DNA of 64,000 nt from Caecitellus pseudoparvulus (GCA_965644315.1 CBFFRQ010000088.1:179834-243833); one strand, 5' to 3'; positions 9,167 to 63,257 are shown, numbered from the stretch's first letter. Numbers and translations: made by a program. The notes: generated by a model not told the origin, from the letters alone.

Positions 9167-10381
9167 ATGCAGACGACGGCGCTGCCATGGCCGACGCTGC
9201 TCGCTATTCAGGGTGAGTGATGGCACCTTGAAACTCCGCAGGTGCACGCGCAGCCCTGCAGCACCCCCAAGCCCCGCCCTTGCGCAGTTTGGGTGATCAT
9301 CCTTGGGTGGGTGGCGACAGCACAGGCTGGTGTCAACGTGGCACTGGCAAGTAGTCTGGGGGGCGCGTCCCTGCTCGCAGCAGCGGTGTCTGTGAGCAGC
9401 ACCGCGGTGCTGTGTGGCTTGTGGGCCGGCGGGCAGGAGATGGCAGAGCGGTCCCAGGACAAGGCGGCCGCCCCACGGCGGTGGCCTGAGTGGTGGAAGT
9501 TCCTGGGCGGCTGCATTGGCTTCCTGTACCTGGGCAGCTCAGTGCTCATCGTACCGCGCCTGGGGTTCAGCCTCACCTACACCCTGCTCGTGTCGGGCAG
9601 CATCACGGCGGGTGTGGCGTACGACCACTACGGCACGCTGGGCATGGTGCGCGCGCCCATTGACCTGTGGAAGATCCTCGCCGTCGCCCTGTGCGTGGCA
9701 GGCGTCTTCTTGAACGTCGTGGCGCAGGTGGAGGCAGACCAGGAAGCGCGGCGGGGGCGTGTTGGGCCTGGGGAGGTGGCCATTGAGAGCCTCGTCACCT
9801 TCGCCATCGGCTGCACGCTGCCTCTGCAGGGCATGCTGAACCGCGCCTTGGGTCAGGCCCTGAAGCGCCCCACGGAGGCGGCCACCGTGCAGTGCGTCGT
9901 GAACGCCCTGTGCTGCGCTGTGGGCTATGGCATCAGCGTGGGGGCTGGGCTATCAGCAACAGGCGGTGTGGCCGAGGGGGCTGCCAGGGCTCCCTGGTGG
10001 ACGTGGCTGGGCGGCGTGGGCGGCCTGCTGCTGGTGTACTCGGGCATGACGTTTATCGCCGTGGTGGGGGTGGGCCCATACTTCATCCTCATCACGCTGG
10101 GGCAGCTGAGCAGCTCACTCGTGTGGGACGCCACTGGCGTGTTCATCCCCCACCGCGTGCCACCCACGTGGCAGCGCCTGGTGGGTGCAGGTGTCGCCAT
10201 GCTGGCGTTCCTGCTGCTGACGCACTCCCGTTCCCTGGCGGCGCTGGAGCGTGCGCGAGACCCCAGCATTGCGGGGGGCCGGGAACGCCTGCTGCAGGGT
10301 GACGAGGAGGAGGGCAGCGGCCAGGTCTCGCCTGCCCTCAGCACCGCCAGCCTGCATGCCGAAATGAAGAGCACTCGTTGA
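9167..10381 (+). CDS. DMT superfamily transporter, YdcZ (DUF606) family; intron at 9213-9287
   Basis: Two internal repeats ('AQAGVNVAL...WWKFLGGCIG...PRLG...YDHYG' and 'LQGMLNRAL...PWWTWLGGVGG...GQLSSSLVWD'), about 10 TM helices. Splicing a 75-nt GT-AG intron gives MQTTALPWPTLLAIQVWVIILG. Confidence 0.8.
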
Positions 10382-12597: not shown

Positions 12598-12869
12598 CCA
12601 AGGGTTGGATCTTCTGAAGCGCCCCCACCTGCAGTGCTGAGCTCAAGGTCCTCTGCAGCCCTGCGGAAATTCGTCCACAAGCGACTCAGACCACGCCTTG
12701 ACGAAGTGTGGGCGGGCGCAGTTCCCGAGCTTAAACACCGAAAAGAAGCACAAAAATTACAATCCACCGCCGTGATGTACTCGCGAGGCGTGCATTTTTG
12801 CCATGTGTGGTGTATTTGCGAAAGAAGCCAGGTCTGCGCAGTGAGTTCGCTGGCGAAGCATGTGCCCTG

Positions 12870-15800
12870 ATGGCTGCTGTCCCTGGTGCTGCTGAGGCGT
12901 CCTCTGGAGCGGGAGGCGCGGCCTGTGAAACTGTAGGTGACATCCTGATCAGCTCCAGGGACTGCTGGGACGACCTGGTCTCGTGGTGCATGCGGGCCCC
13001 CTTTAGCTGCACGCCACACCACGTCGGCATCTGGGCGAGCAGCGCACCTGCAGCACAGCAGCTGCGGCATGACATCGCACCAGCCTGCTCAAGCAGCACG
13101 ACTGCAGCTAGAGATGTCAACCAAGGTGTATCCATTTCATTCCACTGCCTTTCTGGCAGTGGCACGTGGGGACAGCCAGTGGTGGAGGTGGTTGCGGAAT
13201 ATGGTGCTGCGACAGACGCGCCGAAGACCTTGGAAGCTGCGCCTGCCCAGAGCGCCCTACGGCCAGCACAACTTGGGAGCGCCCTACCACTTCAGCCAGG
13301 AGTGTCCCAGCCTGACACCTATCGTGTACACCACGTTGCAGTGGAGGTGGAGGACTTGCAAGCCTGTGTCTCTGCGCTGCTGGCTCAGCACGCTGCAGGA
13401 TGCGTCCTGCTCAGACCAGACCCCGCATGGTCGGAGGGTGCACACCACAAGAGGAGCTTCGCCCCTCTCCAGCAGGGCTTCCCCGCAAAGCACTTTGACT
13501 CCATTCCGCTCCCCGCACCGGTGCTGGCCAGCTTCCACTCTCAGCGAGCGAAGGATCCAAGCACCGCCCTTGCGTGCTACGTCGTCTTCCTGCAGGTCCC
13601 GGGCGTGGGCCTGTTGGAGCTAGTGCAGGCCAGCCGAGTCCACACACTGCCTTCACTTCGCATGCCCCCAGCTGAGGCTGTCGACGTCATGCTGCGCAGC
13701 TCTGCGAGTGCACCTTGCAGGCGGATCGTGGCAGGCACGGTGGAGGTGGCCGCCGTTGCGCGGGCCTTGGAGCAGTTGGCGCCCCCACAACACGGAAGCG
13801 TCGTGCACGTGCAAAGTGCATCGACTACCTCCTGGTTTTTGGCTGATGCGCCTGCTGCAGGCAGCTGCTCTGTCGCGCTCGTCTTCACTGACGGCACGCC
13901 GAGGGCAGCCGCGCTAACGCAGGCTGTGCAAGAGTGGACCGCAGCCTCGCGCAGCAGAGGAGCAGCAGCCCATGCCATGCTGGTAGAGTGTGCAGGGCCA
14001 GCTATTGCGAGCTCCGAAGACCCCGGCTTGCACCTGCGCCCCCTCTCAGACGGTGTCAGCCGCACGCACTGGTCTGCCATCGCACACTCTGCCGGCATGC
14101 GCTCAAGCTGTGTCTTCAACCATGACGCGGACACACACACAGCACTTCCATTTTCTCCAGAGTTCAGCCAGACTGCCGCACTGTGGGCCTTGCGCGCCAG
14201 CTCAGCTGTCACGTCTCGCTCTGCCTCGCGGCTGAAGGTGGTGGCAGTGGACGCAGACAACACACTGTGGCAAGGGGCCCTCGCTGACTGCGACGCACCA
14301 GCTTTTTCTGGACTTGCTTTGGCTCCGCAGCATGTGGCCCTTCAGCGAACTCTGCTCAGTTTGCGGGACAGTGGCGTGCTGCTTGTGCTCGTCACGAAGA
14401 ACAACTTGGCCGATGTGAGCGCCTTGTTCGACGCCGTGGGGAAGCCGCACACCTGCCCCCCCAAGCTACAAGGCATGTCTCTGCACCTTGAGCACTTTGT
14501 CTTGATCAAGGCTTCGTGGGCGGACAAGGGCCAGGGGCTGGCGGACGCGCTCGCACAGCTGGGCCAGGCCCCTGCGAACACAGTGTTCATCGATGACTCC
14601 CCTGTTGAAATCGCATCCGTGAATAGCAGCTTACCGGGAGTGTCAAGCGTGCTCTGGCCACAGGACACAGGGACAGCTATGCAAGTGCTGAGCCACTTGT
14701 GGTTCCTGGACTGTCCGCCACCCCTCGGCTCGGATGCGGCCCCGCAGCGTCGGCAAGCTGCGTACGCTGCAGCAGCCCAGCACCGCAAAGAAGTTGGGAA
14801 GGTAATGAAGTCAGGACCGTCTGATGCGGTTCAGACTCGTCTGGCTGCGTTCTTTGTCGCCTTGCAACCACGCGTTCGCGTCTCTGCAGAGGCTAGCAGC
14901 GCGGTCTTGAAGAGGGCAGCGCAACTGTTCAGCAGAGCAAACCAGTTCTTGAGTGACAAACGTCACATTTCTGTGCAGTTTCTTGAGGACAAGATTTCGT
15001 CTGGCTACCGCCTTCATTCCGCGGGGCTTTCGGATCGTTTCGGCGACGTGGGAGAGCACGTTGCCTTTGTGCTGACGGGCCTGCGACTAGGAGGAGTTGC
15101 TGCGGTGGAGCTCTTCGTGCTCTCATGCCGTGCGATGGGGCGAGGAGTGGAGTACGCGCTATTGTCCCACGTAGCACGGTGTTTTGAGACCCACGCGAGC
15201 AAGGTTGTCTTGCATGGGCAGGCCTCTGGCCGGAACGTTCCGTTCTTGGACTTCCTCCGCGCGCTCGCCAGCAGGGTGCCCGCATCGTCGCTCGACGAGC
15301 AGGCCTCGGGGACGCTTGCACTGGAGATGCCTGCCGCAGCACTCGCGGACTTTGTCTACACCGGTGCCATGTATGCGGAAGACATGCAGCAAGGCGTGGG
15401 GCAAGGTAATCAGCTGACTGCAGCGGATGAGTCAGCGCCCAGACCCTCCGCAGCGCACGTCAACCAAGCAGCGATGTCCCTTGCTCCCCGAAAGCACGCG
15501 GCTTATGCAGTCTGCCTGCCGGATGTAGCCTTTTACCTGCGAGGCTCCCACGTCTCACTTGGCAACTGCCTCCCAGTGGAGGTGCTGAATGTGGCAGAGG
15601 CCAGGTTTGTGTGGGCGGAGGTCTGCCGAGCCCCACCACCATCGGCGCTCCATGAAGTGCAGGACGTGCCATACTCTGCTGTGCTTTCCCGCCTCCCTAC
15701 CGGTGCAGTGGTGTGGGATGTGGGAGCCAACATTGGGCTCTTCACCCTAGCCTGCATGGCTGCAAGTGACGCACCCCGAATCACGGCGGTTGAGCCATTG

Positions 15801-18800
15801 CCTGAAGCCTTCCGGGCTCTCCTGCAGAATACCAAGTGCTGGAAGGAGGTGCTTGATTTTCAAGGTGCTTTGACTGTCTTCGAATGCGCAGCACTGTCTC
15901 AGGAGCGAGCGGGCCCCACAGTTTCGCAAGTGTCCTTCGTGAAACAAGCCACCGCAAGCATTCTGAGCCATGTCCAAGGGCATTCCACTGGCGACGAAGC
16001 TGACGTCGCTGCTGAGTGGATGGGGGCCCAGCTTGGGCCAGCTGCTTCACATGACGCCCACGCAGTCGCAGCGCAGTCTCTTGAACGGACGTCGCTGCTT
16101 CAGGTGCCAGCAAGCAGCCTGTCCTTCCTCTGGCACCTGGCCGGTCGCCCTGACCTGACGTTGCTCAAGGTGGACGTGGAAGGGAGTGAAGCGGAAGCAC
16201 TGCGCGGATGTTCGGCAGAGATGCTGGAGCACACGCAGGTGATCATTGTTGAGGTGCACTTTGCAGGTGTTGCGCGTGACGACCGCTTCAAAGCCATCGC
16301 CGCAAATCTTCGAGCGGCAGGCTTTCTGCTTGCTTCAGCTGAACCTCAGCCACCCTTTTCTCGGCGTCTCTGCTGTGTATTTGCAAAGCTTCATGCCGTC
16401 TGGTTGTGGGACCAGCCTCGTGTGTGGCATGCTCACAGTGCGCGCGCTGTGGCTGCCAAGGCTTGCGTATCAAGCAGCGCCCCGCAGAGAGGTACGCCAC
16501 CAAGGCAGCGCGTGCCGGGGAGTCCAAGCGAGCAGCTGATGCTGGAGGCATGGGGGGCCGCCCTTGCAAACTCCCTCTCAGCTTCTCACGCCAGCGACTG
16601 GAGCCGAAGCACCTTCGTTGAGGCGGGTGGTGACAGCTTGTGCTTGGTGCAGCTTTTGAGCGAGGCACGCCTTCGAGGCATGGCGCTGGACATTTCACAT
16701 GACCTCATGCATATGACCCCAGCGCAGATGGTGGCCAGCTGCGGCCAACGCAGTGAGGAAGTCGTGGTTGTGCGACCACCTATGCAGGCGGCTGTGCGCG
16801 AATCTGCACGTGGCGACGCAGCCTGGCGCAGTCGCATTCTTGTGCTTGGACCGTTGGCGCCATACGAACTCCACATGCAGAAATTGGTGCGAGCGAGTGT
16901 GCGCTCTGACGCGTGCCCTCTGATGCAGACAGCCCTTTTGTGTTTCGTGCATGAGCTGTCAAGGCAAACAAGCACAGTGTGCAATCTCGACGAGGGAGCT
17001 CTCCTGCTGCACTTGTGTGGAGGGGATCGTGCACTTCTCCAGCAGCTGGACGGCGTGCTCCAGCATGGTGGACCCCCCCCTGAGCTGGATGCAGCAAGAA
17101 CCATTCCAGAGGGCGTCCGCCTTGGCGCTGTCGTCATGCTGCACCTTCTCGGAGCTGCGCGCCTTGTACACGATAGCCAGGGCGAGATCCGCAGCGTCGG
17201 GCACTGCATCGGCACTTTGACTGAGCTGGCCTTGGAATACTCCAAGACCAACTACAGCTTCACTAGATTTTTAGCAGCTGGCCAGGCGTCCATTGCTGCC
17301 GCAGTGCACTTCGGCGCAGCAATGGACGCTGTGCATGGCGCGCGGAGTGACGGGCTGAGCAGGCACGCGCCGTTGGCGCACACCCCGCTGACGTCTAGCT
17401 GCAGGGTAGGTGACGGTGGTCCTGAGGTCTTTACTCAAAGTGCAGTGCATGCCCAGGGCGCCCACCTAGCCGGCCGCACCGGACCGCTGTCCTTGACCCT
17501 CGTGGCCACCGCTGCGGCCGATGCGTTTCCTTCTGGCGCCGGCCTCCAAGCTCTGCACCACGGCTATCACACGCCAACAAACGTCGGCGTCATGAGGAAG
17601 TATGTGTCAACGTATGCTTTTTCTGGCGCTCAGCACATTCTTCCTGCGGATGCCTTGGAGTGTTGCGTTCGGCGCCTGGCGTACAGCCCGTTTGACTTCA
17701 TGAAACGCCTGCAAGCGACCCTTGACTCTGTGAAGGGAAGCGCACCGATCATCCAAGAAATGGGACCGCTTGACTACGCCTGTTCGCCGATCTTTACACC
17801 AAGCCTGTTGCTTGGATTCTTGCAGGGTCAGGAGTGCACAAGACACGCTTGGGTTCGAGGACCATTCGCCGACGACCAAGAGCAGTCAGTGCTTGTGCCA
17901 GTCGCGATGTGCGCAAGTGTGAAACGTGTCCAAGTGCGATCATCTGCGACCCAGGAGCATGTTAGTGCCGCTGAGGTTGGGCCTCTCGCGCTCACAGTAG
18001 CTGAAGCTGCACTTGAGCTTCTTACAGACGTCTCAGCTGGCTCCACTGTCTCAGCCCCTGCCCAGCTTGAAACCACGCGGCTCCGCACAACTTGGTGGGA
18101 GATGGGCTTTTCATCCCAAGACATGCCTCTGCTTCTTCAGCGCTTGCGCCAGTTGCGAGACATGCCATGCATGCACCAGTTGGCGTTGGGCGACTTGATA
18201 CAGTGGCCCACTCCTGAGCTTCTTGCAAAACACGCACTGGAAGCGAGCCCACCGCCAACAGACTCACCGCTTGTATCTCCCCCCCAGGACATTCGGGCAC
18301 CATCTGTGAGTGGAGTGTCTCTTTCAGGGTGCGGCGTGCGGATCGGGGGCTTGCGGCACCTGAAGGAGCTTTGGTCAGATGCCACCTGGCGAGGAGCTGC
18401 CGCAGCCTTGATTGCACCAGAGGATGTCAAGGGTGTTTTTGGACTGTCTTCTCCGAGCAAGGACTTCATGGACCCTCAGCAGGTCCTAGCCCTTGCTGCT
18501 GTCCAAGATGCGCTGTCCGAGTCCGGGCTATGTGCTCGCGTCGATCCCGAGCGCGTGGGCGTGTGGGTGGGGGTACAAGCGAGTGACTGGAAGCGTGCAC
18601 GGCAGCCCCGAGGGGGTGGCATGCACGGGATCTTGGGAAGCACGCCGTCTGCGATCGCCAGTCGAGTGTGTACGGTGTTCAGCTTCGGTGGCCCCGCAGT
18701 GGCTGTGGATGCTGCGTGTGGAAGCTCCAGTTCGGCGCTAGAAGCAGCCCTGAATGCGATGCACATGAACTGTGTTGACGCTGCTGTCGTCATTGGGACG

Positions 18801-21800
18801 CAGGTCAATTTGGCAGCCGATGCTGAGCGAGAGCTGGCCGAGGTTGGCGTCCTGAGTGCCACGCAAACCACCCCCTTCGCGTTCCTCCAGGATGCCGAAG
18901 GACGCGGCGGCTTCGTCCGTCGACAAGCTGTGGTAGCGCTGGTGCTGGAACGGGGGAAGCGGTCTGTGATCGAATTAGCTTGCGCAGCTTCCGGCTTCGT
19001 CGGCCAAACTGGTGCCATGCACGTCGTGGATGCAGACAGGTACGCTGCGGTTGTGCGCCGAGCTCACCAACGAGCAGGCATTCAAGCGGGCGATGTTGCT
19101 CATGTGGAAGCACATGCAACTGGAACATCTGTTGGCGACGCATCTGAACTTCGGGGGCTGAGTTCCGTTTTCCCTGACGCACGCCCAAGCGTCGCTTCGT
19201 CCAAGGGTCTGTTGGGACACACTGAGGCCTGTTCTGGTGCGCTCAGCCTCGCCTTTGCCAGGGAGTGCATGCTACACGACTTGCCCCCGCACATGGAAGT
19301 GCTAAGGTCCCGTGCTTGGAAGCTTGGTCCCCAGCCGTGTACAACTGCAGCGAGCGGCCCCCCACAAGTCGTCGGCGTCTCCAACGTTGGTTTGACGGGG
19401 ACCATGACACACATCATCCTGAAGCGGCGCACTGCAGCACTTGGCAACGCTGATACAACGGCCCATGTGCTGCCTTTGGGGTGCCCAGCGGGCTGTGCAC
19501 TGGGAGGCGTTTTGCGTCAAGCGCGTGACGTGCTGTGCAGCACGGGGAATGTGCAGCCCTTGACTGAATTGGTAACTGCAGCTTGGCAGCGATGGTGCAC
19601 CACGTGCGCGACAGCCACCTGCATTTTTTCAAGCACCCATGCTCTGACAGTAGACGCAATTGTTTCAGGCTTGGAGGTCGTCATGGATGCGCTGCCTGGG
19701 TCAAGGAGCGGCGCTGCCAAGCAGCAAGGCGTGCAGTGTCTGTGGCGGACACAGGCACCATCACGCGCCATCGTGCACGTTCAGTGGGCCCCTCCACACT
19801 CTGGGCTCCACGTCTCGAACAACTGGAACTCCATCATGCAAGGCGGTGTCTTGGAACTGCTCTCCGCACTTGCTCGAGTGATGTCCAGGCTTGAGAGCGA
19901 CACGCAGGGGGATGCGACCGCTCTGCGGCAGCTCGCTGTGGATTGTGCCACCACCCTCCACGCACATGCCGTCCCACTTACTGAGCTCATCGTCGACCTG
20001 CTCCAGTGCTCATGCAGTGTTCCGTCCAGTCAGTGCCCTTTTGGCCCCGCGTTCCTCGGCGTTGGGCCAGGCGCACGCTCACTGCCGCTACACTTGCATG
20101 CTTCTAGTCGCCTTGCACTGCTCGCTGCGATGTTCGCCGTGGCTCTTGACATGAGCGATTTCCCTCTGTCAAGCCTTGCGGATGCTTTGGTGTGCGAGTT
20201 GCTCGCATCGTTTAGCTCGGGCGAGTCAGTGCGGACTGTAGTGCAAGCCGCGTTGGAGGAGTCTTTGCAAGCCACGCAGGAGGCGTGGATGCAGCCTGAG
20301 AAGTGGCAGCAGCCGGTGACATTCTCATTCAGTCCAAGACAGCAGCAGACGTCACATGATGCATCGGACGCGTGGGAAGAACTTGTTGCGCGTTTGGCAG
20401 CTCAAGGACCCCGAGGGAGGCCATCGGAGCCAGGCCGTGATCTATTGGTGTCCCCTGGGGGTTGGCGGGTTTTCGCAGGTGAAGAAGCAGTCCCTGTCCC
20501 TTTCCCTGCAGCTGCAGCTTGGGTGGGCCTCTGCCCTGCGAGCTGTGCAACGAAAGCAGCGGCCCCAGTGCCCGGGTTTCCACCCGTCCCAGCTTGGCCA
20601 TCTGTTGAGCTTGCGCACCCCGTCCGACCGCTGCACCTTTCGGAGCGCCTCCCTCGGGATACATTGGTCACTAGCTCTGGCATGGACACAACCCTGGCAT
20701 TGCAAGTGGCCAGAGCGGCGTTTATCGGCGTTTGTGGAGGCGGAGCGGACTCGGTAGCAAGGGTCGAGGAGGTGCTGGGTGCGACCCACACTCCATACGT
20801 TGAAGCGCTCGGTTGGGACAGTCTCCAGTGCAGCATGCTCCCAGGAACACTTGAGTTGGAGCAAGACAAGCTAGGGCACATGGCCGCACCCGTACAGGTG
20901 CCCCCCACCATTGCATTTGACGCCCCCACTGTTCATGAGCTGATCATGGTTCTGTCAGGCAGCGCACAGCAGAGCCTTGGCCAGCAGGTGCCAAGGTCCC
21001 TGAGCCCCTCCATAGGCCTGACAGCTGTCGGGATCAGCGGGCTTGCTCTTCGACTTGGTGCAGGCACCAACAAACTGTCTGACTTCGCTTCCCGCATTCG
21101 CAATGGTCAGGCTATTGCTTCATCTGCCACCCTGCCCCAGTGGAAGCTTCGTTGCATGGGACAGGCGGCGGTGGACGGGCTAGTACCTTGCATCTCCTTG
21201 TGTGACAGTGATGTGCAGCCGCTGGTCACATCACAGCCGTTCATAGATCCACACCACAGCATCATGCAGCGTGTCGCGCAGGAGGCATTGGAAGATGGTG
21301 GCTTGTGGAGCGGTGTGTCCGGCTGGTCGCAGGGAGTCGACCCACGCAGAGTCGGCTGCGTGATTGGCTGCACAAACAGCGACTTTGTGCGGACGGCGGT
21401 GGTTCAATCTGATCACTCGGCCCCCCCTTCATTTGCAAGTGGCTCCCAGCGTGCCATGATCGCAGGCAAAGTGCAGCGCGCGTTCGGCTGTGGCGGCCCC
21501 GCCATGGTGGTGGACACAGCGTGCTCCTCTGGATTGGTGGCGCTGTCCCTTGCGCTGCGAATGATTCAGCAGGATGAAGCCGACTTTGTCATAGTGGGCG
21601 CAGTGAACCTTGTCCTAGCAGCCGCTGTCTCTTCTGCGCTTGTGGGCATGCGGGTACTTTCTTCCACTGGTGCCTGCCGAACCTTGGAGGCGGACGCAGA
21701 CGGCTACACACGTGCTGACGGCTGCGTGGCGATGGTTCTCGCACGAGCTGATGCTGGCCCTCAGTATGCGCTGGTAGACTCTGTCCACCTGAATCACAAT

Positions 21801-24800
21801 GGCAGCTCTGCGAGCTTGACGGCGCCAAACGGCTCTGCGCAACGGCGCTTGCTGGAGGCAGCTTGGACTCACGTGCCTGCGCCCGCCCATGTCGAACTGC
21901 ATGGATCTGGTACTAAGCTAGGTGATGCAATTGAAGTCCAGGCGTTAGCTTCAAGCCTTGCAGGTGCACGATCTGTCCTCGGCGCATCCAAGCGTGTGTT
22001 TGGTCACACAGAAGGCGCTGCGGGGTTGGTTGGCGTGCTCAGCTCTATCCTTGCGCTGCACGGCGTCTTTCAAGCTATGCCTCCCCCTGATCGACTTTCT
22101 GAAGACCTCAAGGTTCACATGGGTATCGATGAGGGGACTGGGCACCTCAGTCTGGGTGGAGGTATGGCTGCCAGTGTTGTCCATGCTCAACCAGCAGCTC
22201 ACAGTGGCGTGTCATCATTTGGATTTTCAGGAACCAACGCCCATGCTGTGCTATCATCAGCCCGAGACCCTCGGCAATTGTCATTATCCGTGCAGGACAT
22301 GCCCCAACGTCATGCAGCGCTGCCGGACCCGCCATGTGGCTCACAGACCGTCGATCAGGAGTCACACCAGGAAGCGGCAAGCACCCGTGAGTTTGTCAAG
22401 GTAGCAAGCACAGAGGACGTGCAAGGCACCCTGTTGCTATTGGAGTCGGCGCTGGACGTCATTGAAGTGCCGAGCTTTGAAGGCGGTGCCGATGAAGGTC
22501 ATCGGACTGTCTGTGTGCATGCGGCGAGCGGGAAGGGGGTGTTGGGCCACGTCGCCAGCGCTCTGCTGCAGGCTTTTCCACCACATCGCCTTGATGATGA
22601 GGCCAGCACCCAAGTACATGTGCTTGATTTGGCGGCCTTCAACGCAGATGCACTCGCTGGCCTTGGTTGTGTTCGAGACGCTTTGCGGGCTGCATTGTTG
22701 TCTGGGGCGCAGAGCATCGTGCTTCTGTTTCACCCTGCAGATGCATGTCAGGCTGTCGCTGCCAAGGTTGCCATGCAGCTCTGGCAGTGTGAACGATGTG
22801 GGGCGAGTGAGCTGCTTCCAGCCGTCTGTGTGGAGTTGGGCAGCGGCAGCCCCCTCCCCATTCTCGTCCAGCTACTGGAGGCTGGGGCCCGCAAACTGCG
22901 CCTGGTGCGCGCTGAGGTCTCGCTGCACTTGCGAGGTGGAAGCGTGCGGGCTCCAAGGGTCAGTGGGACCCACGCTCAGCCCTTCAAGAAGCGCCCACGT
23001 TTGGGGCCCTGGGAGGGCAAAGGTTTGGTAGTGGTCGGGGCTGGCGCGATCGCAAACGCAGCAATTTCTGCTGCCGTTCAGCATGGCTGCAAGTTTGTTG
23101 CTGTGCTGAGCCGGCACTCGCACACCGAGGCGCTGCAACAATCCCACCCTGGTTGCACCTTTGAAAGCATTTGTGTCGATGCAAGTGACGCAAGTGCCTT
23201 GTCGTTGGCGCTAGGCACTTGTGCATCGTGGGCCGCGCGGCATGGGGTGCGCCTGCGCTCAGTTGTACATGCCGCAGGCTCTCCACATGCTTCCCCTTTG
23301 GCTGACTCGGACTGGACAGCAGTGTCTTCACACTACGCTCTCAAGTACGAGTGCGTGACAGCCCTGCAGCGCTTCTGCTCGACGCATTGTGTGGACAACC
23401 TCGTGTTGACTTCGTCGTGCTCAACGCTGTGGCCTCTGGCCGGGTACGGTGACTACGCGGCGTCGCACGCAGCCTTAGAGGAAGCTGCTCTGACCAACTC
23501 TTTGAGCACCTACACCGTGTCAGATGATGCCTTCTCTGCGGTGCTGACAGCCCCCCAGGTCGTGTCCTTGCGAACCATTGTCTTGCGACTGGGGGTCGTG
23601 TCACAGGGTGCCGTTGCCGAGCTGGTGGAGCAAGGCTTGTACAAGCGCATGGGCGTAGCAGCGATAGACACTGCCACACTGACAGAAGTTTTCTCATGTG
23701 CCATGCTCGGGGATTCAGAGCCTCTTGTGACTCTTGCTGCGTTTCACGACTGCTCTCTGTTCCGGAATGTGGTTCGACTCGGGCTTAGAGTGCCGAACCT
23801 GCCACTGCTCGGCGGCCTCGAACTCGACGCAGGCGCCCCTTTGCCTGCGAACCCCAGCCCGCAGGTTGAGATTTATGAGCCGAAGGAAGCGCTTGTGGCT
23901 GCGTGTCGAGCCAGTGGCCTTGGGCCCGAAGTTGAGCAGCATGTGGCGGGTTCAAGTGCCGGTGCCAGGTTTGATCCCGCTGAGCTGGGAATCGACTCCC
24001 TCGCTGCGGTGGAGCTCGCCTTCTACATGCAGCAAGAATGCGGGTACCCCATCGCCCCAGATGTATTCTTGGCCCCTTTTACCCTGGACCAGCTTGGTCG
24101 CTCCTTGCCCGTGGTCGCAAGTCAACCCCCAACGCAGCCACCCAAGTCTGCAGCACCCATGTGCGATCCGGCAAACGCAGTGCATATCCATGCTGCTGCT
24201 TGCATCTTGCCGGGAGGTGTCGAGACGCTTCGTGACTTTGCAGTGCGCACATTCTGCCCGGTGCCTGTGTTTTCGCCGGCACCCAGCGAACGCTGCAGCC
24301 ACGCGAGCACGCAGTCTGCACTCCCGCCCTCGGGCTGGCTATCACCTCACCAGATTGCCTGCATTGAAGCTGAGGCCAACAGGTTTCCACCTGCCCAGCG
24401 CTCAGAACTTGATCCACATCACTTGCTGCTGCTCCGCCTGGCCAGCAAAACGTTGGCTGGCGTAGACAGGTCCAACTTCCATCGCATCGGTACGTATGTG
24501 TGCGGAGGTGCGTCTTCCTTCGTGTCAAGTCGAAACTCTCGCCTGCAAGCTACGAAGTATGCGGCCATGGGAACGGCTCCAAACTTTGCAGCCGATCAGA
24601 TCGCTCATACTTTCGGACTGACCGGCCCAACCATGGTGGTCGATTCCGCTTGTGCCAGCGGCATTGCTGCATTGGACATCGCATGTCGGCATCTAAGCAG
24701 CGACATCTCAGACGCAGCTCTGGTGTTGGGTGCCAACCTCCTCCTCGATGCCCGCTCCTTTGAGCAACTTCGGCACCTCGGCGTGTTGGCGAGTGAGTCG

Positions 24801-27800
24801 CTAGGCGACATGAACAGCGGCTCAGCTGGATATTTCCGAAGCGAAGGCGGGGTGGCGTTGTTGCTGACGCGCACAGCAAGCCCCTCGGATGACCTGGGCT
24901 GCATTCAGTCTGTCCGCCTCGGCCACAATCCGCGAAGTGACGCTTCAGCCATCACCACGCCAAGCTTTGCAGGGCAGTCAAGCATCATGGACCACCGCGC
25001 CTATTCGCATGGCAGCATCCTTGTTGAGGCCCATGCTACAGGCACAGTAGCTGGGGATGCCATTGAAGCACAGTCTCTCCTTGCTGCGCAAGGTGGCCGG
25101 CAAGACGGAGCGTTCGTTCATGCTGCCAAGCGAACGTGGGGGCACTTGGAGGGCGGGGCAGGACTACTGGGCTTGCTGTCTGCATGTGTGCAGGGCCTCG
25201 TCGGACTGGCCGCGCCGACCTGGCCTCTGACCTACTCACTGTCTTCAGGCCAAGCTGCTTTGCCCTGTGTTTCGTATGCGCGGAGTCTGGGTCCAGATTG
25301 TGCAGCAGTAGTGAACAGCTTTGGGTTCGGCGGCAGTGTTGCGCAGGCGACGCTCTCGTTTCCACCGTCCCAGCGCCCGGGCCAGGAGGCAAGCGGGGAG
25401 CCCTTCACGATCTTGGTCCTCCCCGGGCAAGGCTCCGTATCGCAAGGCTTCTGCCAACACATGGTCCACAAAAGCGGGTCATTCCACGCGTTCCTCAACG
25501 CCGCTCTGCAAGAGGCTAGTGCTGCAAGTGCTGGGGTATTCTCAGCTGGCCAACTGCAAGATCTGTGCCTTGTGCCGGGTGGGAGGCTGCCTGGCCCGCC
25601 TTCCAGCTGGCTCCGTGCGGCTGCTGTGCAAGTAATGGCGTTGGCCGCGTCCATCGCTACAGGCCAGGCTGCAGTGCAGGCACTGGGGAGGCTTCCCGAC
25701 GTCGTGCTTGGGCACAGCCTTGGCCAGCTGGCTGCAGCGGTCATCGCAGCATCACTGCCCATTGGCGGAGCCTTTAGGCTCTTGTTTCAACGCCTTGGGC
25801 CTGAATCTGCCGACTGCACATTCTGGAGCACTGCCATGATCGCAGTTCGAGCGTCCAGCTCCCATGTCAAGGCGGTGCTAGCCAGCGCAGGGCAACACAG
25901 TGCCCAAGTCGCGTGCATCAATGGGCCGTCCTCATGTACAATAGGGTGCGCTGCCGGGAGTGAGGACGAAGTTGTCAGCGCACTGCAAAGTGCGGGGCTT
26001 CGCCACACAGTGCTGCCAGACGTCGCCGCGTACCACACGGAGCAAGCTGCGAGCTCAGCAGGTAGGGTTTTGCACACATCCTCCACTGGGATCCTCGCAT
26101 GCACACTGGTTACATGTGACGGGGAGCTGCACGCTGCTGGGCAACAGCTGCCCGCCGGAGTTTGGGCACGACTAACCCGTGATGTGGTGAACTTTCCAGC
26201 TCAGCTGCGGGCGGCTCTGTCGTCCTGCCCCCACGGACACGCACTTTTGTTGGATGGTTCGGCTGGAGGCTCTTTCCATGGCCTATGCACGAGCATTCTT
26301 GCTGACTGGGCAGCTGTGCCCGAGAGCACAGGAGCCGCAGCGTCCCGACCCACTCCAACGAGCCAGCCTGAAGTGCGGGTGTTCAGTCTGTGGGCCAAGG
26401 CGCAGCGTGAGGAAGCTGCGACGAAAGCTCCAGCCGTGCCCTCAGCTTGGATCAAAGCCATCGGCCAGTCCAGGTTGGGGCAGGCCGGCATTGCACAGCT
26501 ACCAGCTCCTGCAGCGTCCCCGTTGGAACCCTGCGCTACGTTGCCAGATTGGAGTCGCTGGAAGATCGCGAGGGATGATGTTCGAGAGCACACGAACGCT
26601 TCGGCAGTACCTCTGGTGTATGCTACCTATCAAGAGCTCTCCAGTCAGCTGTCCTTCCTCGATGCAGGCAGTGACCCGTGGGAAGTGCTGGAAGACTTGT
26701 CGAGTCGACTGCTGCGTTGCCTCGCCGCACACATAGGCCCTTCCACTCCCGATCACTTGTCACGGCTGCTACACGACCACGCTCAAGACGGAAGTGCACA
26801 GGAAGCCCCTGCAGACTTGCTGGCGTCCATTGCCGCCCAGAAAGACGTGGTTGGTTCCGTGTGCATGGCCGAGCTGTCGCTTTTGGAGCACGTTTGCCTC
26901 GCTGCTGAGGGCCTGTCCTCAGGGCACATTGCACCCATGGACGTATTGTTCCCATCAGGAAGCCAGGCGTTGGTGGCACCCATATACAGCGCGACGCCAA
27001 GGGCCCGACTCATGAACGCTTTGCTCGTTGAGTCTGCAAGCGCCGCTGTCTCGGAGGCTGCTGCCAGAAGTGGCGGGCCGGTACACGTGCTGGAGCTAGG
27101 AAGCGGGACTGGCAGCTTGAGCGTCCCGCTGTTACACCGCCTGAATACGCTCCCCATCGCCCACCAGGTGCACCTGTGGCTCAGCGACATCAGCCCCTCT
27201 CTGCTCGCAAGACTGAAGGCGCGGCTTGAGGCGCTGTCAGCTGAAGTGCACTTGCACTGCTGCGTGTTGGACGTGAACAAGGCGGCATCTTCGTGTCTTG
27301 ATTTCCCAGCACAGCACATGGTCAGCGTCTTGCTCGCATCCAATACGCTGCATGTAGCTTCGGACGTGCCTTCCGCCTGGCAGCAGCTGCAAACGTTCCT
27401 CGCTCCGAGAGCACGTGTGATTCTGAGGGAAGTGACGCTGGGCACAGCCTTCTTGGACTGCACGTTTGGCCTCCTCCCTGACTGGCAGCTCGCTGCTCAG
27501 GGCCACAGTCCTGGCAGGACATCTGCAGTGCTGTCCTTGTCGGAGTGGCAAGCAGCCCTTCGCGGTGCCGAGTTGCTGGAAGTGCAGCCTCGGGATGCAC
27601 TCCGGGCGCTGGGCGGAAGGTGCGCAGTAGCCCGTCATCTCTCCGACTTTGAATGTGTTCTTGATTTCCTTGTCCTTGCTGAAGGTGTGGGCAGCGTGAA
27701 CGCTGCGGTTCGCACAGATCACGTCGCCCGTCCCGACCGTGCAGAAGGTGCAGCGCTGCAGTCCAGCGCCGCCCTTGCCATTTCTCAGCACGCCTTGGTT

Positions 27801-28643
27801 CCACAAGGGTTCAGCGATGAGACTCCACTGCAACATGTTTCCATTGACTCCATCGGCATGGCAGCTGTTGCGTCGGTGCTGCAAGAGCGCTTCCAATGCT
27901 CCGTGGAGGCTGCCCTCGCTGCTCTCACCAACGCAATGCGCGACGGCCGCGGGGGGCGAGAAGTGGATGCTGCACTTGCGGGGATGCCATCTATGCGCCC
28001 AACTCGCGCTCAATCGAGCAGTCGTCATGTGATAATATTCCCGCCAGCGGGAGTACCTTCCGCTGCCTACCGAGGCTGGCGTGAGAAGGGAGAAACTTAC
28101 GTACGTGTGCTGCCATGCTTCAGCGAGTGGGCCACACGCCACCCCGGCGGCGCCCCTGAAGCATACTTGCAAGATTTACACGCAAGCTTTATCACGTACA
28201 TGGCCATTGCAGGGGGCGGTGGAGCAGTGACGGTGTTCGGGCACTCCCTGGGAGCACTGCTGGCTCACCGGGTCTGGAGCACAGCCAGCCAAGCCTGCGC
28301 ATACACGGCAGTTAACATCATTGTGTCCTGTGCGCCGCCGCCTGCAGGTGCCGCTCATGCTCTTGCCCACATGCCACCGACCAGCAGCTCTCCGTCCATG
28401 AGATGGGTGCGGAGCGATATCGAAGCATTCGTTGCATTGCCCGAAGTCACCTCCAGCGCGCCAGCACCGCCAGCTTCCCTGCACGTTTGGCTGGCCACAA
28501 CAGACGACGTTTTTCCCCACCTTGCAGTTGATGCCCGAAGCACTTGCAAGCGTTGGGCCGCAGCCTTTGGCGTCGCCCAGGCGCCTGGCGTCGTGTGGGT
28601 GCCCTCCCACTCATGGGGCGTGCCGGCCTCCTCGCCTACGTGA
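12870..28643 (+). CDS. Multimodular type I polyketide synthase: VOC-FkbH-FkbM-ACP-(AT*)-ACP-KS-ACP-KS-KR-ACP-KS-AT-MT-ACP-TE
   Basis: Single open frame, first ATG at 12870. Three KS domains with C/H/H triads (DAACGS/AHATGT/GHTE; DTACSS/LHGSGT/GHTE; DSACAS/AHATGT/GHLE). ACP serines GGDSL, GFSSQ, GWDSL, GIDSL, SIDSI. KR GAGAIA..HAAG..YAAS. AT PGQGS..GHSLG..AYHT. MT LELGSGTG. TE GHSLG. FkbH DADNTLW/FIDDS/LSCR. FkbM DVGANIG/KVDVEG. Confidence 0.93.
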   Translation: MAAVPGAAEASSGAGGAACETVGDILISSRDCWDDLVSWCMRAPFSCTPHHVGIWASSAPAAQQLRHDIAPACSSSTTAARDVNQGVSISFHCLSGSGTWGQPVVEVVAEYGAATDAPKTLEAAPAQSALRPAQLGSALPLQPGVSQPDTYRVHHVAVEVEDLQACVSALLAQHAAGCVLLRPDPAWSEGAHHKRSFAPLQQGFPAKHFDSIPLPAPVLASFHSQRAKDPSTALACYVVFLQVPGVGLLELVQASRVHTLPSLRMPPAEAVDVMLRSSASAPCRRIVAGTVEVAAVARALEQLAPPQHGSVVHVQSASTTSWFLADAPAAGSCSVALVFTDGTPRAAALTQAVQEWTAASRSRGAAAHAMLVECAGPAIASSEDPGLHLRPLSDGVSRTHWSAIAHSAGMRSSCVFNHDADTHTALPFSPEFSQTAALWALRASSAVTSRSASRLKVVAVDADNTLWQGALADCDAPAFSGLALAPQHVALQRTLLSLRDSGVLLVLVTKNNLADVSALFDAVGKPHTCPPKLQGMSLHLEHFVLIKASWADKGQGLADALAQLGQAPANTVFIDDSPVEIASVNSSLPGVSSVLWPQDTGTAMQVLSHLWFLDCPPPLGSDAAPQRRQAAYAAAAQHRKEVGKVMKSGPSDAVQTRLAAFFVALQPRVRVSAEASSAVLKRAAQLFSRANQFLSDKRHISVQFLEDKISSGYRLHSAGLSDRFGDVGEHVAFVLTGLRLGGVAAVELFVLSCRAMGRGVEYALLSHVARCFETHASKVVLHGQASGRNVPFLDFLRALASRVPASSLDEQASGTLALEMPAAALADFVYTGAMYAEDMQQGVGQGNQLTAADESAPRPSAAHVNQAAMSLAPRKHAAYAVCLPDVAFYLRGSHVSLGNCLPVEVLNVAEARFVWAEVCRAPPPSALHEVQDVPYSAVLSRLPTGAVVWDVGANIGLFTLACMAASDAPRITAVEPLPEAFRALLQNTKCWKEVLDFQGALTVFECAALSQERAGPTVSQVSFVKQATASILSHVQGHSTGDEADVAAEWMGAQLGPAASHDAHAVAAQSLERTSLLQVPASSLSFLWHLAGRPDLTLLKVDVEGSEAEALRGCSAEMLEHTQVIIVEVHFAGVARDDRFKAIAANLRAAGFLLASAEPQPPFSRRLCCVFAKLHAVWLWDQPRVWHAHSARAVAAKACVSSSAPQRGTPPRQRVPGSPSEQLMLEAWGAALANSLSASHASDWSRSTFVEAGGDSLCLVQLLSEARLRGMALDISHDLMHMTPAQMVASCGQRSEEVVVVRPPMQAAVRESARGDAAWRSRILVLGPLAPYELHMQKLVRASVRSDACPLMQTALLCFVHELSRQTSTVCNLDEGALLLHLCGGDRALLQQLDGVLQHGGPPPELDAARTIPEGVRLGAVVMLHLLGAARLVHDSQGEIRSVGHCIGTLTELALEYSKTNYSFTRFLAAGQASIAAAVHFGAAMDAVHGARSDGLSRHAPLAHTPLTSSCRVGDGGPEVFTQSAVHAQGAHLAGRTGPLSLTLVATAAADAFPSGAGLQALHHGYHTPTNVGVMRKYVSTYAFSGAQHILPADALECCVRRLAYSPFDFMKRLQATLDSVKGSAPIIQEMGPLDYACSPIFTPSLLLGFLQGQECTRHAWVRGPFADDQEQSVLVPVAMCASVKRVQVRSSATQEHVSAAEVGPLALTVAEAALELLTDVSAGSTVSAPAQLETTRLRTTWWEMGFSSQDMPLLLQRLRQLRDMPCMHQLALGDLIQWPTPELLAKHALEASPPPTDSPLVSPPQDIRAPSVSGVSLSGCGVRIGGLRHLKELWSDATWRGAAAALIAPEDVKGVFGLSSPSKDFMDPQQVLALAAVQDALSESGLCARVDPERVGVWVGVQASDWKRARQPRGGGMHGILGSTPSAIASRVCTVFSFGGPAVAVDAACGSSSSALEAALNAMHMNCVDAAVVIGTQVNLAADAERELAEVGVLSATQTTPFAFLQDAEGRGGFVRRQAVVALVLERGKRSVIELACAASGFVGQTGAMHVVDADRYAAVVRRAHQRAGIQAGDVAHVEAHATGTSVGDASELRGLSSVFPDARPSVASSKGLLGHTEACSGALSLAFARECMLHDLPPHMEVLRSRAWKLGPQPCTTAASGPPQVVGVSNVGLTGTMTHIILKRRTAALGNADTTAHVLPLGCPAGCALGGVLRQARDVLCSTGNVQPLTELVTAAWQRWCTTCATATCIFSSTHALTVDAIVSGLEVVMDALPGSRSGAAKQQGVQCLWRTQAPSRAIVHVQWAPPHSGLHVSNNWNSIMQGGVLELLSALARVMSRLESDTQGDATALRQLAVDCATTLHAHAVPLTELIVDLLQCSCSVPSSQCPFGPAFLGVGPGARSLPLHLHASSRLALLAAMFAVALDMSDFPLSSLADALVCELLASFSSGESVRTVVQAALEESLQATQEAWMQPEKWQQPVTFSFSPRQQQTSHDASDAWEELVARLAAQGPRGRPSEPGRDLLVSPGGWRVFAGEEAVPVPFPAAAAWVGLCPASCATKAAAPVPGFPPVPAWPSVELAHPVRPLHLSERLPRDTLVTSSGMDTTLALQVARAAFIGVCGGGADSVARVEEVLGATHTPYVEALGWDSLQCSMLPGTLELEQDKLGHMAAPVQVPPTIAFDAPTVHELIMVLSGSAQQSLGQQVPRSLSPSIGLTAVGISGLALRLGAGTNKLSDFASRIRNGQAIASSATLPQWKLRCMGQAAVDGLVPCISLCDSDVQPLVTSQPFIDPHHSIMQRVAQEALEDGGLWSGVSGWSQGVDPRRVGCVIGCTNSDFVRTAVVQSDHSAPPSFASGSQRAMIAGKVQRAFGCGGPAMVVDTACSSGLVALSLALRMIQQDEADFVIVGAVNLVLAAAVSSALVGMRVLSSTGACRTLEADADGYTRADGCVAMVLARADAGPQYALVDSVHLNHNGSSASLTAPNGSAQRRLLEAAWTHVPAPAHVELHGSGTKLGDAIEVQALASSLAGARSVLGASKRVFGHTEGAAGLVGVLSSILALHGVFQAMPPPDRLSEDLKVHMGIDEGTGHLSLGGGMAASVVHAQPAAHSGVSSFGFSGTNAHAVLSSARDPRQLSLSVQDMPQRHAALPDPPCGSQTVDQESHQEAASTREFVKVASTEDVQGTLLLLESALDVIEVPSFEGGADEGHRTVCVHAASGKGVLGHVASALLQAFPPHRLDDEASTQVHVLDLAAFNADALAGLGCVRDALRAALLSGAQSIVLLFHPADACQAVAAKVAMQLWQCERCGASELLPAVCVELGSGSPLPILVQLLEAGARKLRLVRAEVSLHLRGGSVRAPRVSGTHAQPFKKRPRLGPWEGKGLVVVGAGAIANAAISAAVQHGCKFVAVLSRHSHTEALQQSHPGCTFESICVDASDASALSLALGTCASWAARHGVRLRSVVHAAGSPHASPLADSDWTAVSSHYALKYECVTALQRFCSTHCVDNLVLTSSCSTLWPLAGYGDYAASHAALEEAALTNSLSTYTVSDDAFSAVLTAPQVVSLRTIVLRLGVVSQGAVAELVEQGLYKRMGVAAIDTATLTEVFSCAMLGDSEPLVTLAAFHDCSLFRNVVRLGLRVPNLPLLGGLELDAGAPLPANPSPQVEIYEPKEALVAACRASGLGPEVEQHVAGSSAGARFDPAELGIDSLAAVELAFYMQQECGYPIAPDVFLAPFTLDQLGRSLPVVASQPPTQPPKSAAPMCDPANAVHIHAAACILPGGVETLRDFAVRTFCPVPVFSPAPSERCSHASTQSALPPSGWLSPHQIACIEAEANRFPPAQRSELDPHHLLLLRLASKTLAGVDRSNFHRIGTYVCGGASSFVSSRNSRLQATKYAAMGTAPNFAADQIAHTFGLTGPTMVVDSACASGIAALDIACRHLSSDISDAALVLGANLLLDARSFEQLRHLGVLASESLGDMNSGSAGYFRSEGGVALLLTRTASPSDDLGCIQSVRLGHNPRSDASAITTPSFAGQSSIMDHRAYSHGSILVEAHATGTVAGDAIEAQSLLAAQGGRQDGAFVHAAKRTWGHLEGGAGLLGLLSACVQGLVGLAAPTWPLTYSLSSGQAALPCVSYARSLGPDCAAVVNSFGFGGSVAQATLSFPPSQRPGQEASGEPFTILVLPGQGSVSQGFCQHMVHKSGSFHAFLNAALQEASAASAGVFSAGQLQDLCLVPGGRLPGPPSSWLRAAAVQVMALAASIATGQAAVQALGRLPDVVLGHSLGQLAAAVIAASLPIGGAFRLLFQRLGPESADCTFWSTAMIAVRASSSHVKAVLASAGQHSAQVACINGPSSCTIGCAAGSEDEVVSALQSAGLRHTVLPDVAAYHTEQAASSAGRVLHTSSTGILACTLVTCDGELHAAGQQLPAGVWARLTRDVVNFPAQLRAALSSCPHGHALLLDGSAGGSFHGLCTSILADWAAVPESTGAAASRPTPTSQPEVRVFSLWAKAQREEAATKAPAVPSAWIKAIGQSRLGQAGIAQLPAPAASPLEPCATLPDWSRWKIARDDVREHTNASAVPLVYATYQELSSQLSFLDAGSDPWEVLEDLSSRLLRCLAAHIGPSTPDHLSRLLHDHAQDGSAQEAPADLLASIAAQKDVVGSVCMAELSLLEHVCLAAEGLSSGHIAPMDVLFPSGSQALVAPIYSATPRARLMNALLVESASAAVSEAAARSGGPVHVLELGSGTGSLSVPLLHRLNTLPIAHQVHLWLSDISPSLLARLKARLEALSAEVHLHCCVLDVNKAASSCLDFPAQHMVSVLLASNTLHVASDVPSAWQQLQTFLAPRARVILREVTLGTAFLDCTFGLLPDWQLAAQGHSPGRTSAVLSLSEWQAALRGAELLEVQPRDALRALGGRCAVARHLSDFECVLDFLVLAEGVGSVNAAVRTDHVARPDRAEGAALQSSAALAISQHALVPQGFSDETPLQHVSIDSIGMAAVASVLQERFQCSVEAALAALTNAMRDGRGGREVDAALAGMPSMRPTRAQSSSRHVIIFPPAGVPSAAYRGWREKGETYVRVLPCFSEWATRHPGGAPEAYLQDLHASFITYMAIAGGGGAVTVFGHSLGALLAHRVWSTASQACAYTAVNIIVSCAPPPAGAAHALAHMPPTSSSPSMRWVRSDIEAFVALPEVTSSAPAPPASLHVWLATTDDVFPHLAVDARSTCKRWAAAFGVAQAPGVVWVPSHSWGVPASSPT

Positions 28644-59616: not shown

Positions 59617-59960
59617 TGTGGCGCACGCTGCTGTGCACTAGGCACAGCAGGAGCGCCACAGCGGCTCCCACTCTCGTGGGTCTGCAGCCATCACGGACAT
59701 ACGTCCGTTGTATGAGCCGCCGCTTGCTAGGGCGCGCCCGCGCCCGCCCATACGTGTCGAACTGCCCCGCCCGCGCCCTCTCGGCTCAGTCGGCTGAGCC
59801 AGAGAGGGCCGGGCCCACTCCTACTTCGTCCCAGTCCACACTTCGCTTCATAATTCAGAAACCCCCCGCATCTCCTGGCCCTCGCCAGGCACTGCACACG
59901 TGCCTGGGGCCACTGCGCGCTGCCCTGAGCCGCAGTGGCCGCCTTCGGGGTGGCGTTTCA
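59617..59960. other. Cluster of strong inverted repeats; candidate structured 3' end of the adjacent retroelement
   Basis: Paired arms at 59617-24/59653-60, 59628-36/59642-50, 59661-66/59715-20, 59693-98/59703-08, 59775-89/59794-809, 59885-92/59900-07 and 59908-17/59931-40. Confidence 0.6.
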
Positions 59961-60387
59961 CGACGGTGTTGCACTGCACCACGCAGGTGGTAGCAGCGCG
60001 CACCGCCGGAACAACGCCCCCCGCGACCAAGAACACCAAGAACACCTCCCCCTCTTCACAGAACATCCAGCTGATTCATCAATCAAGGCCCTGAGGACCG
60101 GTGCGCCCCGCCTGCGACGTTTCCCCGCGCGCCCGCGTGTTCACCCTGCCAAATTCCGCGCGCCCCGTCACAGGATTTTCACTGGAGCTGCACATGGACC
60201 CCGAGCCATCATGTAAGTATACTGGACACATTCACTTCATCATCTTCCAACTTTCCACAGGTTTCATCATCGATCAAGGACATCGCCTCCATGCGCACCT
60301 GCACTTCGCTCAACCACAACCGTGGTTGTCACCACGCCACGCCGTAAGCTTGCACCGCCTCGCGCCGCGCTCTACACACATCGCCCG

Positions 60388-62481: not shown

Positions 62482-62825
62482 CTACATACATAAATGTATG
62501 AGCTGCCGTGCCTCGGATTGCTGACGCAACCTGCGGCTAACACGGACTCAGAAGCGGACATAAATATATATATATCTACTAATCAGCTATAGATTCTATG
62601 AATACATACCCCGCATACAATATATTAATATATATTTATTTATATCAGAATCTATATTTTTAGATATATAATCAAAACAGTTAATGATATTATGCGATAG
62701 CGTAATATTATTAAATCCATATGATAAAGTTATAAAAACTCCCTTCTAATTACTATAAATATTATCAATACACAATATCTGTTATATAATACAGATACTA
62801 TATAAAAAAACTCTAAGAGACACCA

Positions 62826-63098
62826 AAGATACAGAACAACAGGAAAAACAGCTATTTTTTAAGATTTCATATAACCTTTTATCAATATGATATTTTCAGA
62901 TGTTATTTATGTTTTTGTGTAAGATTCATTGCAAATAATATAATACAAATATACTGTTGTAAAATACAGATACATAACAAACAAATTAAACAAGCTAACG
63001 AAGATACAGAACAACAGGAAAAACGGCTATATTTTGAGAATTTAGACAACCTTTAATCAATATGATATTTTCATATGTAATTTGTGTTGTTGTGTAAG
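62826..63098 (+). repeat. Two imperfect ~100-nt direct repeats, 175 nt apart
   Basis: 'aagatacagaacaacaggaaaaac...atcaatatgatattttca...tgtgtaag' begins at 62826 and again at 63001. Confidence 0.9.
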
Positions 63099-63257
63099 CT
63101 TTACATTACGATAAAAAAGAAAGAGAGAGGGACCAAACGAGCGAGACGAAACCATATATAATAATATCAAAAGAATCAGACATAGCGTGGGTGTGTGTGC
63201 GAATATATAATAAAAAACACTCTCTCACATTTTTAAAGGGTTTCAAGAAATATAATA

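Follow-up and report, generated by a model that had tools for sequence, protein, structure and literature searches.

The DNA analyzed here is a 64,000-nucleotide stretch of the genome of the marine protist Caecitellus pseudoparvulus (GCA_965644315.1 CBFFRQ010000088.1:179834-243833; this whole stretch is referred to as the window), and it encodes a large polyketide synthase (PKS) that begins with the domains VOC, FkbH, FkbM and a carrier (T). On balance, these domains probably act as a priming cassette that delivers a glycerate-derived, O-methylated and VOC-processed starter, most likely epimerized at C2, to the PKS. The domains are identifiable, their catalytic motifs are intact, and the partnership of FkbH with a VOC domain recurs in bacterial assembly lines; the substrate, the methylation site and the stereochemical outcome of the cassette are predicted. 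Judged by its sequence relationships, the N-terminal region is a homolog of the VOC domains that are linked to FkbH in bacteria.

The PKS gene lies in an uninterrupted open frame on the + strand (12798..28643, 5281 codons), which yields a protein of ~5260 aa from the first ATG. Domains were called with Pfam and NCBIfam on the whole frame and on overlapping pieces of it, and the resulting order is VOC-FkbH-FkbM-T0-(AT-like?)-ACP1-KS1-?-KS2-KR-ACP-KS3-AT-cMT-ACP-TE, where T0 is the loading carrier. The active-site Cys and both His motifs are kept in all three ketosynthases (KS1, KS2 and KS3). The eukaryote-type relatives of this protein (the query) are few. P0001 and P0009 come from ENA assemblies and are 97% copies. 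P0002, of 5246 aa, shares ~29% identity with the query and runs collinear with it between residue 396 and the C-terminus; its match in the VOC region is weak. A scan of JGI metagenomes revealed no further collinear FkbH-FkbM loci, and gave FkbH-only matches of at most 34% identity. The features that carry the argument are as follows.

12870..28643, + strand: the whole PKS gene, from its first ATG
12990..13700, + strand: VOC domain (like glyoxalase I and methylmalonyl-CoA epimerase, MCE), from hhalign, ligand columns, an AlphaFold (AF2) model and Foldseek
13899..14231, + strand: extension at the N-terminal side of FkbH, which can be aligned with what precedes FkbH in bacterial modules
14232..15272, + strand: FkbH domain (HAD-IIIC phosphatase plus glyceryl transferase), from TIGR01686 and alignments with relatives
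15708..16328, + strand: FkbM-family S-adenosylmethionine (SAM) methyltransferase, from PF05050 and TIGR01444
16533..16754, + strand: loading carrier T0 (PCP-like, GGDSL), from hhalign, with GGDSL conserved in P0002

FkbH/OzmB enzymes divert D-1,3-bisphosphoglycerate, dephosphorylate it and pass the glyceryl group to a carrier. The FkbH domain of the query scored 149.9 bits against TIGR01686, just over the curated cut-off of 146.65 bits, and 154.4 bits in a whole-genome profile search, and the HAD-IIIC profile was matched at 43.9 bits against a cut-off of 35.75. Both HAD motifs, VDADNTLW (the DxDxT motif, with DADNT at 14250) and FIDDS, are intact and align with those of bacterial FkbH. The transfer Cys is that of the LSCR motif at 15126-15128, where VLSCRAMGRGVE of the query is aligned with LLSCRVLGRTVE of P0007, a Lentzea nonribosomal peptide synthetase (NRPS), and the Cys is present in P0002 as well. 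Furthermore, the N-terminal extension of the unit is recognizable in BLASTP, with query residues 344-454 aligned to residues 1552-1664 of P0007, and this stretch is conserved in P0002. With all catalytic motifs present, the domain is predicted to load glyceryl from 1,3-bisphosphoglycerate onto the carrier.

The FkbM domain passed both curated cut-offs (PF05050, 56.2 bits versus 22.7, E 6e-15; TIGR01444, 65.9 bits versus 37.7), and its motifs DVGANIG, starting at 15717, and KVDVEGSE, at ~16167, are present. FkbM-family enzymes are SAM-dependent O-methyltransferases, and because more than 60 bacterial proteins carry FkbM in fusion with FkbH and T, the domain would be expected to O-methylate the carrier-bound glyceryl group. 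The carrier T0 has its GGDSL motif starting at 16626, with the phosphopantetheine Ser at 16635-16637. Its score against the Pfam PP-binding profile (PF00550) was 14.8-15.6 bits, which is under the cut-off of 20.8; however, a profile of the query, P0001 and P0002 was aligned by hhalign with 60 bacterial T domains at 96.7% probability (E 4e-10), and this alignment lays GGDSL on the GG(H)SL of the bacterial domains with the Ser residues in register, so that T0 belongs with the carriers.

The VOC domain is the most divergent part of the cassette, and a search of the region against the PDB with phmmer gave no meaningful match. Its protein-language-model neighbors are all VOC families, at a score of just 0.89. 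The connection to bacteria came from P0007, in which FkbH is followed directly by a strong Glyoxalase_4 domain (65 bits); a search with the FkbH-VOC stretch of P0007 retrieved 34 bacterial megasynthases with an FkbH-VOC pair. Because a hidden Markov model of these bacterial VOC domains matched the query only in fragments (14.4 bits), profile-profile comparison with hhalign was needed. A profile of the eukaryotic N-terminus was aligned with the 34 bacterial FkbH-linked VOC domains at 94.3% probability (E 1e-7) over 158 columns, which span both halves of the VOC fold, and the score of 53.4 compares with 12.6 for the reversed alignment and no more than 14.8 for 22 column shuffles. The predicted metal ligands are the His of HHVGI (13017), the Glu of VVEVV, the His of VHHVAVEV (~13330) and the Glu of LLELV (~13612), and all 30 aligned rows, those of the query, P0001 and P0002 included, have His, Glu, His and Glu at these positions. 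The Gln of the NQGV motif is nearly invariant in the same alignment. The ligand columns and this Gln are thus shared by two eukaryotic lineages that are only ~26% identical in the VOC region.

Structure prediction gave a similar picture, although the AF2 model was built on the alignment with the bacterial domains and is hence not independent of the hhalign result. When AlphaFold was run on residues 1-450 with 4 aligned rows, the mean pLDDT was 35.5, and with the 30-row alignment it produced two beta-alpha-beta-beta-beta modules with a core pLDDT of 70-90, a pTM of 0.62 and disordered insertions. In Foldseek this model matched best to the glyoxalase I of Clostridium acetobutylicum (2qh0/3hdp) and to MCEs (TM score by target, 0.58-0.70). 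Compared with solved structures, the FkbH-linked VOC family scored 105 bits against Clostridium glyoxalase I and ~48 bits against MCEs. The MCE equivalog TIGR03081 had no match in the query, and the bacterial FkbH-linked domain scored 52.5 bits, below its cut-off of 114.95. A previous reading of this DNA, made from the sequence only, had called a VOC, an FkbH, an FkbM and an ACP domain in this part of the gene. The motifs that it cited (HHVGI, DADNT, LSCR, DVGANIG and GGDSL) lie where it had put them, in the single open frame described above, and all of the calls proved right. In the Pfam and NCBIfam scan FkbH and FkbM are above their curated cut-offs, while the VOC domain and the carrier are below theirs and are backed by hhalign.

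To place the cassette among known architectures, the domain orders of bacterial proteins were examined. In the bacterial sample, proteins with both FkbM and FkbH were most commonly DH-FkbM-FkbH-T (38 proteins), followed by ~20 FkbM-FkbH-T(-C) proteins and others, and FkbM stands ahead of FkbH in every case sampled. The DH profiles PF14765 and PF21089 had no match within query residues 1-1500, so the query falls outside the DH-FkbM-FkbH-T group, from which it also differs in domain order. The bacterial FkbH-VOC modules have the form C-FkbH-VOC-T and occur in 34 NRPS/PKS proteins from at least four phyla, the hosts including Lentzea, Streptomyces, Brevibacillus, Paenibacillus, Clostridium, a Flexibacter-labelled strain and an Acidobacteriota bin. 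FkbM is absent from 33 of these 34 modules; the remaining one, T-C-FkbM-FkbH-VOC-T-C in the Chitinophaga japonensis NRPS P0150, is the single bacterial module with all four domains. Some of the Paenibacillus and Brevibacillus FkbH-VOC proteins also list MaoC-dehydratase and KR families. As a separate observation, ~11 of the bacterial FkbH-VOC modules (P0132, P0138, P0142, P0147, P0148 and others) have a second, shorter VOC-like stretch before the carrier, which resembles a tandem or one-and-a-half VOC arrangement.

Since bacteria hold the same domain set, only the eukaryotic PKS host and the order VOC-FkbH-FkbM-T are unusual. The sequence-only reading knew of no such four-domain fusion in a eukaryotic PKS, and this holds, but the domain set is found in bacteria, as FkbM-FkbH-VOC-T in Chitinophaga, and although the permuted order was absent from the bacteria sampled, the component cassettes are abundant in them. 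In the open literature, searched by keyword, no paper was found that links FkbH with a VOC, glyoxalase or VOC-type epimerase domain. The eukaryotic PKS setting, the permuted order and the link between FkbH and VOC look new. In a tree of FkbH domains, the four eukaryote-type proteins form one clade (support 100), but the branch leading to this clade is long, and no bacterial group joins it as a supported sister.

Glyoxalase I and MCE are proton-transfer enzymes that act through a metal-stabilized ene(di)olate beside a thioester or hemithioacetal. Because both stabilize ene(di)olates, deprotonation of a carrier-bound glyceryl thioester at C2 would be the expected chemistry of the VOC domain. In the proposed pathway, FkbH would take D-1,3-bisphosphoglycerate from glycolysis, its HAD half (DxDxT) would strip the phosphate, and the Cys of LSCR would hold the glyceryl group; by analogy with characterized family members, this group would then be handed to the GGDSL carrier, on its phosphopantetheine arm. 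The FkbM-type domain may use SAM to O-methylate the carrier-bound 2,3-dihydroxypropanoyl thioester, and the VOC metallo-domain may abstract the C2 proton to give a metal-bound enediolate. Reprotonation of the enediolate on the other face would amount to C2 epimerization and would give an L-configured O-methylglyceryl starter, which would pass to KS1, probably by way of a degenerate AT-like region and a second carrier.

Loading of glyceryl by FkbH and its methylation by FkbM is the most economical reading of the cassette, and this much of the starter proposed by the sequence-only reading is best supported; the C2 epimerization that it added competes with at least one other plausible outcome of the VOC step. 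Epimerization is the most likely of these, narrowly ahead of beta-elimination, and it has this slight edge because 33 of the 34 bacterial VOC modules are without FkbM and some of the proteins list a separate MaoC-dehydratase and KR. Condensation (C) domains that group beside the 'after E domain' clade numbered 0 of 25 downstream of FkbH-VOC-T and 3 of 45 downstream of FkbH-T, a comparison made with too few references and without a marked difference between the two groups. The position of the cassette supports a starter role, as it is N-terminal and upstream of a ketosynthase with intact catalytic residues.

The part of the protein between the loading carrier and this ketosynthase contains the following features.

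16827..17819, + strand: region with no Pfam match and faint acyltransferase-like features, a lead from protein-atlas neighbors only
18000..18254, + strand: ACP1, a probable second carrier with the motif MGFSS (hhalign 70%, E 4e-5)
18432..19286, + strand: KS1, with the active-site Cys (VDAACGSS) and both His motifs

Between T0 and KS1, ~550 residues are without a Pfam or NCBIfam match. The AT-like region (~400 aa) has GHCIG where acyltransferases have GHSxG, with Cys replacing Ser; its atlas and language-model neighbors are all AT(+ACP) at 0.88, and hhalign supports the assignment weakly (E 0.007, probability 5%). The order T-AT*-ACP-KS, which is unusual, would follow from the AT-like region and ACP1.

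Several observations weigh against the priming cassette as proposed. The VOC domain is strongly divergent: it scored 18.2 bits against Pfam Glyoxalase_4, where the cut-off is 27, it contains two insertions of ~25 and ~60 aa, and the Cys found without exception in the bacterial domains (HLCY motif) is Ala in both the query and P0002. The unexplained region of ~400 aa and a second carrier separate the cassette from KS1, FkbM could methylate O2, O3 or an enol, and the present data do not distinguish epimerization from other enediolate outcomes. In addition, the stretch was found in no RNA run in the sequencing-run search; the DNA contigs over it have no joints, and contigs of this kind cannot show expression. 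The divergence of the VOC domain could mean that it is a remnant, decayed or with a structural role only, for example in dimerization or docking, in which case the cassette would give a D-O-methylglyceryl or plain glyceryl starter. The score below the Pfam cut-off, the absence of any NCBIfam match at E up to 10, the recovery of only the 97% copy P0001 by phmmer from 1.8 billion representatives, the predicted disorder of the insertions and the lost Cys all fit such a remnant, as does the Tyr beside this Cys, which is His in the query but is retained in P0002. However, the four ligand columns and the Gln have been kept across two diverged eukaryotic lineages and the core of the domain is predicted to fold with pLDDT values of 70-90, and we regard a remnant as rather improbable. 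It should be noted that the VOC domain could instead serve as the equivalent of a dehydratase, with the enediolate losing its 3-hydroxyl to give an enol-pyruvoyl thioester that FkbM caps as a methyl enol ether, so that the starter would be 2-methoxyacrylyl. This would mirror the commonest bacterial FkbM/FkbH architecture, DH-FkbM-FkbH-T, with a VOC domain in the query where the bacterial proteins have a DH, and the nearest solved relative of the VOC family is glyoxalase I rather than an epimerase. The near-complete absence of FkbM from the bacterial FkbH-VOC modules argues the other way, because it implies that the VOC step is independent of methylation, and a dehydratase and a KR are already listed in some of the Paenibacillus and Brevibacillus proteins. 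Moreover, we know of no VOC enzyme that dehydrates a 2,3-dihydroxyacyl thioester, and dehydration by the VOC domain is considered unlikely, though it is a serious competitor to epimerization.

The classical role of FkbH, as the first step of methoxymalonyl-ACP synthesis, and the presence of one clear AT only in the synthase would suit a cassette whose product is an extender unit of the FkbG-K kind (hydroxymalonyl- or methoxymalonyl-ACP) and not a starter. The cassette nevertheless stands at the extreme N-terminus, ahead of the first KS, its methyltransferase is of the FkbM and not the FkbG type, and Pfam detects no FkbK- or FkbI-type dehydrogenase in the open reading frame, to which this search was confined, all of which makes an extender very improbable. 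A bacterial contaminant or a chimeric assembly, so that the gene would not be the protist's own, is in our judgment improbable in the extreme. The G+C content of the PKS (0.60-0.62) is ~5-8 points below that of the neighboring genes (0.66-0.70 in the flanks), the gene has no introns, and the recognizable relatives of its domains are all bacterial. On the other hand, the PKS is flanked on the same contig by genes for an importin, a WD40 protein, a P-type ATPase and a YdcZ-type exporter, and these neighbors place it in a eukaryotic chromosomal context; the stretch recurs at 95-99% identity in contigs from marine metagenomes and from DNA runs made independently, the metagenome DNA being that of the organism itself or of a close relative, and the FkbH branch is long and lies inside no bacterial clade. 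The protist source named in the sequence-only reading agrees with the flanking importin, WD40 and P-type ATPase genes and with the size of the genome (30.6 Mb in 215 contigs; the window lies within contig C88), and the low G+C content of the PKS is consistent with a comparatively recent foreign origin.

A search of the genome found no other modular PKS, so that 12870..28643 is the only one, and a borderline match to a phosphopantetheinyl transferase was located on contig C57. Two further genes were noted.

9242-10378, + strand (that of the PKS): bacterial-type YdcZ (DMT) exporter gene (PF04657, E 4e-41)
G000:C29:13346-14452, - strand: stand-alone FkbH gene (locus L001), open frame of ~1064 aa

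The YdcZ exporter gene lies ~2.5 kb upstream of the PKS and is the sole neighbor that could plausibly be linked to the pathway. In the stand-alone FkbH the DCDNT, LDDNP and MSCR motifs are intact and no carrier is fused; in the FkbH tree it occupies a long branch within a mostly bacterial clade of FkbM-linked FkbH (support 98). Contigs of related strains at ~97-98% identity keep the PKS frame open, with ~2.4% nucleotide divergence and no frame-breaking indel. In run X9, a +1 insertion and a -1 deletion that lie 4 bases apart (window 16502-16506, just upstream of T0) compensate each other in frame. Elsewhere in the window, the G+C content drops abruptly to 0.34 at 62001-64000, compared with ~0.64 in the rest of the window, and the GC skew at 58001-60000 is +0.37, well beyond that of every other 2-kb bin.

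FkbH modules are the known route by which a C3 unit enters assembly lines directly from glycolysis, and the adjustment of the stereochemistry or oxidation state of this unit on the carrier is understood for few pathways only. FkbH is regularly accompanied by a VOC metallo-domain, in 34 bacterial megasynthases and, rearranged, in a eukaryote, and this recurrent partnership is the broader lead. Tentatively, and with somewhat less confidence than we place in the priming cassette itself, the FkbH-linked VOC domains may represent an unrecognized class of on-line tailoring domain, either an epimerase or an enediolate-driven dehydratase, that acts on carrier-bound glyceryl (alpha-hydroxyacyl) thioesters; it would be common to dozens of bacterial NRPS/PKS modules and would have been recruited in rearranged form by a marine protist, where together with FkbM it would make a methylated C3 starter from glycolysis. 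The protist VOC-FkbH-FkbM-carrier unit is a compact test object of ~1300 aa, for which the bacterial modules with or without VOC or FkbM are natural controls. The PKS is also a rare example of a bacterial-style, glycerate-primed synthase in a marine protist, and it bears on the oxygenated C2/C3 starter units of protist polyketides, which lack an explanation.

Compared with FkbH/OzmB-type enzymes (those of FK520, oxazolomycin and tetronate biosynthesis; TIGR01686), the query shares the DxDxT motif, the transfer Cys and a carrier in cis; however, it is fused into a eukaryotic megasynthase between VOC and FkbM, is ~30-35% identical to these enzymes and sits on a long, unplaced branch. The bacterial FkbM-FkbH-T and DH-FkbM-FkbH-T proteins, which are annotated as 'FkbH-like protein/FkbM family methyltransferase', have the same core of FkbM, FkbH and carrier in one polypeptide as the query, but their FkbM precedes FkbH and most have a PKS-type DH, whereas in the query FkbM follows FkbH and a DH is lacking. 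The searchable literature yielded no characterized cassette of either kind. The loading module of phormidolide, with FkbH, DH and O-methyltransferase domains, has reportedly been proposed to make a methyl vinyl ether, which would speak for the dehydratase alternative. A review supports this composition of the phormidolide loading module in outline only (PMC7600079), and published maps of orphan trans-AT PKS clusters from sponge symbionts show FkbH together with FkbM (PMC7196800).

In dysinosin biosynthesis, DysB combines FkbH, a methyltransferase and a sulfotransferase in one NRPS protein and accounts for an O-methylated glyceric acid unit, a precedent for the starter proposed here (PMC6520454). 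The likeness to the query lies in the on-line tailoring of FkbH-loaded glyceric acid by a fused methyltransferase; DysB differs in belonging to a cyanobacterial NRPS, in having a sulfotransferase and in having no reported VOC domain. The C-FkbH-VOC-T modules, such as those of Lentzea cavernae (P0007), Streptomyces prasinus (P0137), Brevibacillus (P0151) and Clostridium tagluense (P0155), contain a homologous VOC domain with the ligand columns of the query, and no published function for these modules was found in the literature searched. Their VOC domain follows FkbH within NRPS lines, behind a C domain, and has the invariant Cys, whereas that of the query precedes FkbH and has lost this Cys. 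Finally, the MCEs (1jc4/1jc5, 3rmu and 6wf6) and the Ni-dependent glyoxalase I (3hdp/2qh0) have the same paired beta-alpha-beta-beta-beta fold and His/Glu/His/Glu site as the query. These enzymes act on a CoA or glutathione adduct, while the substrate of the query domain would be carrier-bound, and the NQGVSISF segment of the query resembles EHGVSVVF of human MCE.

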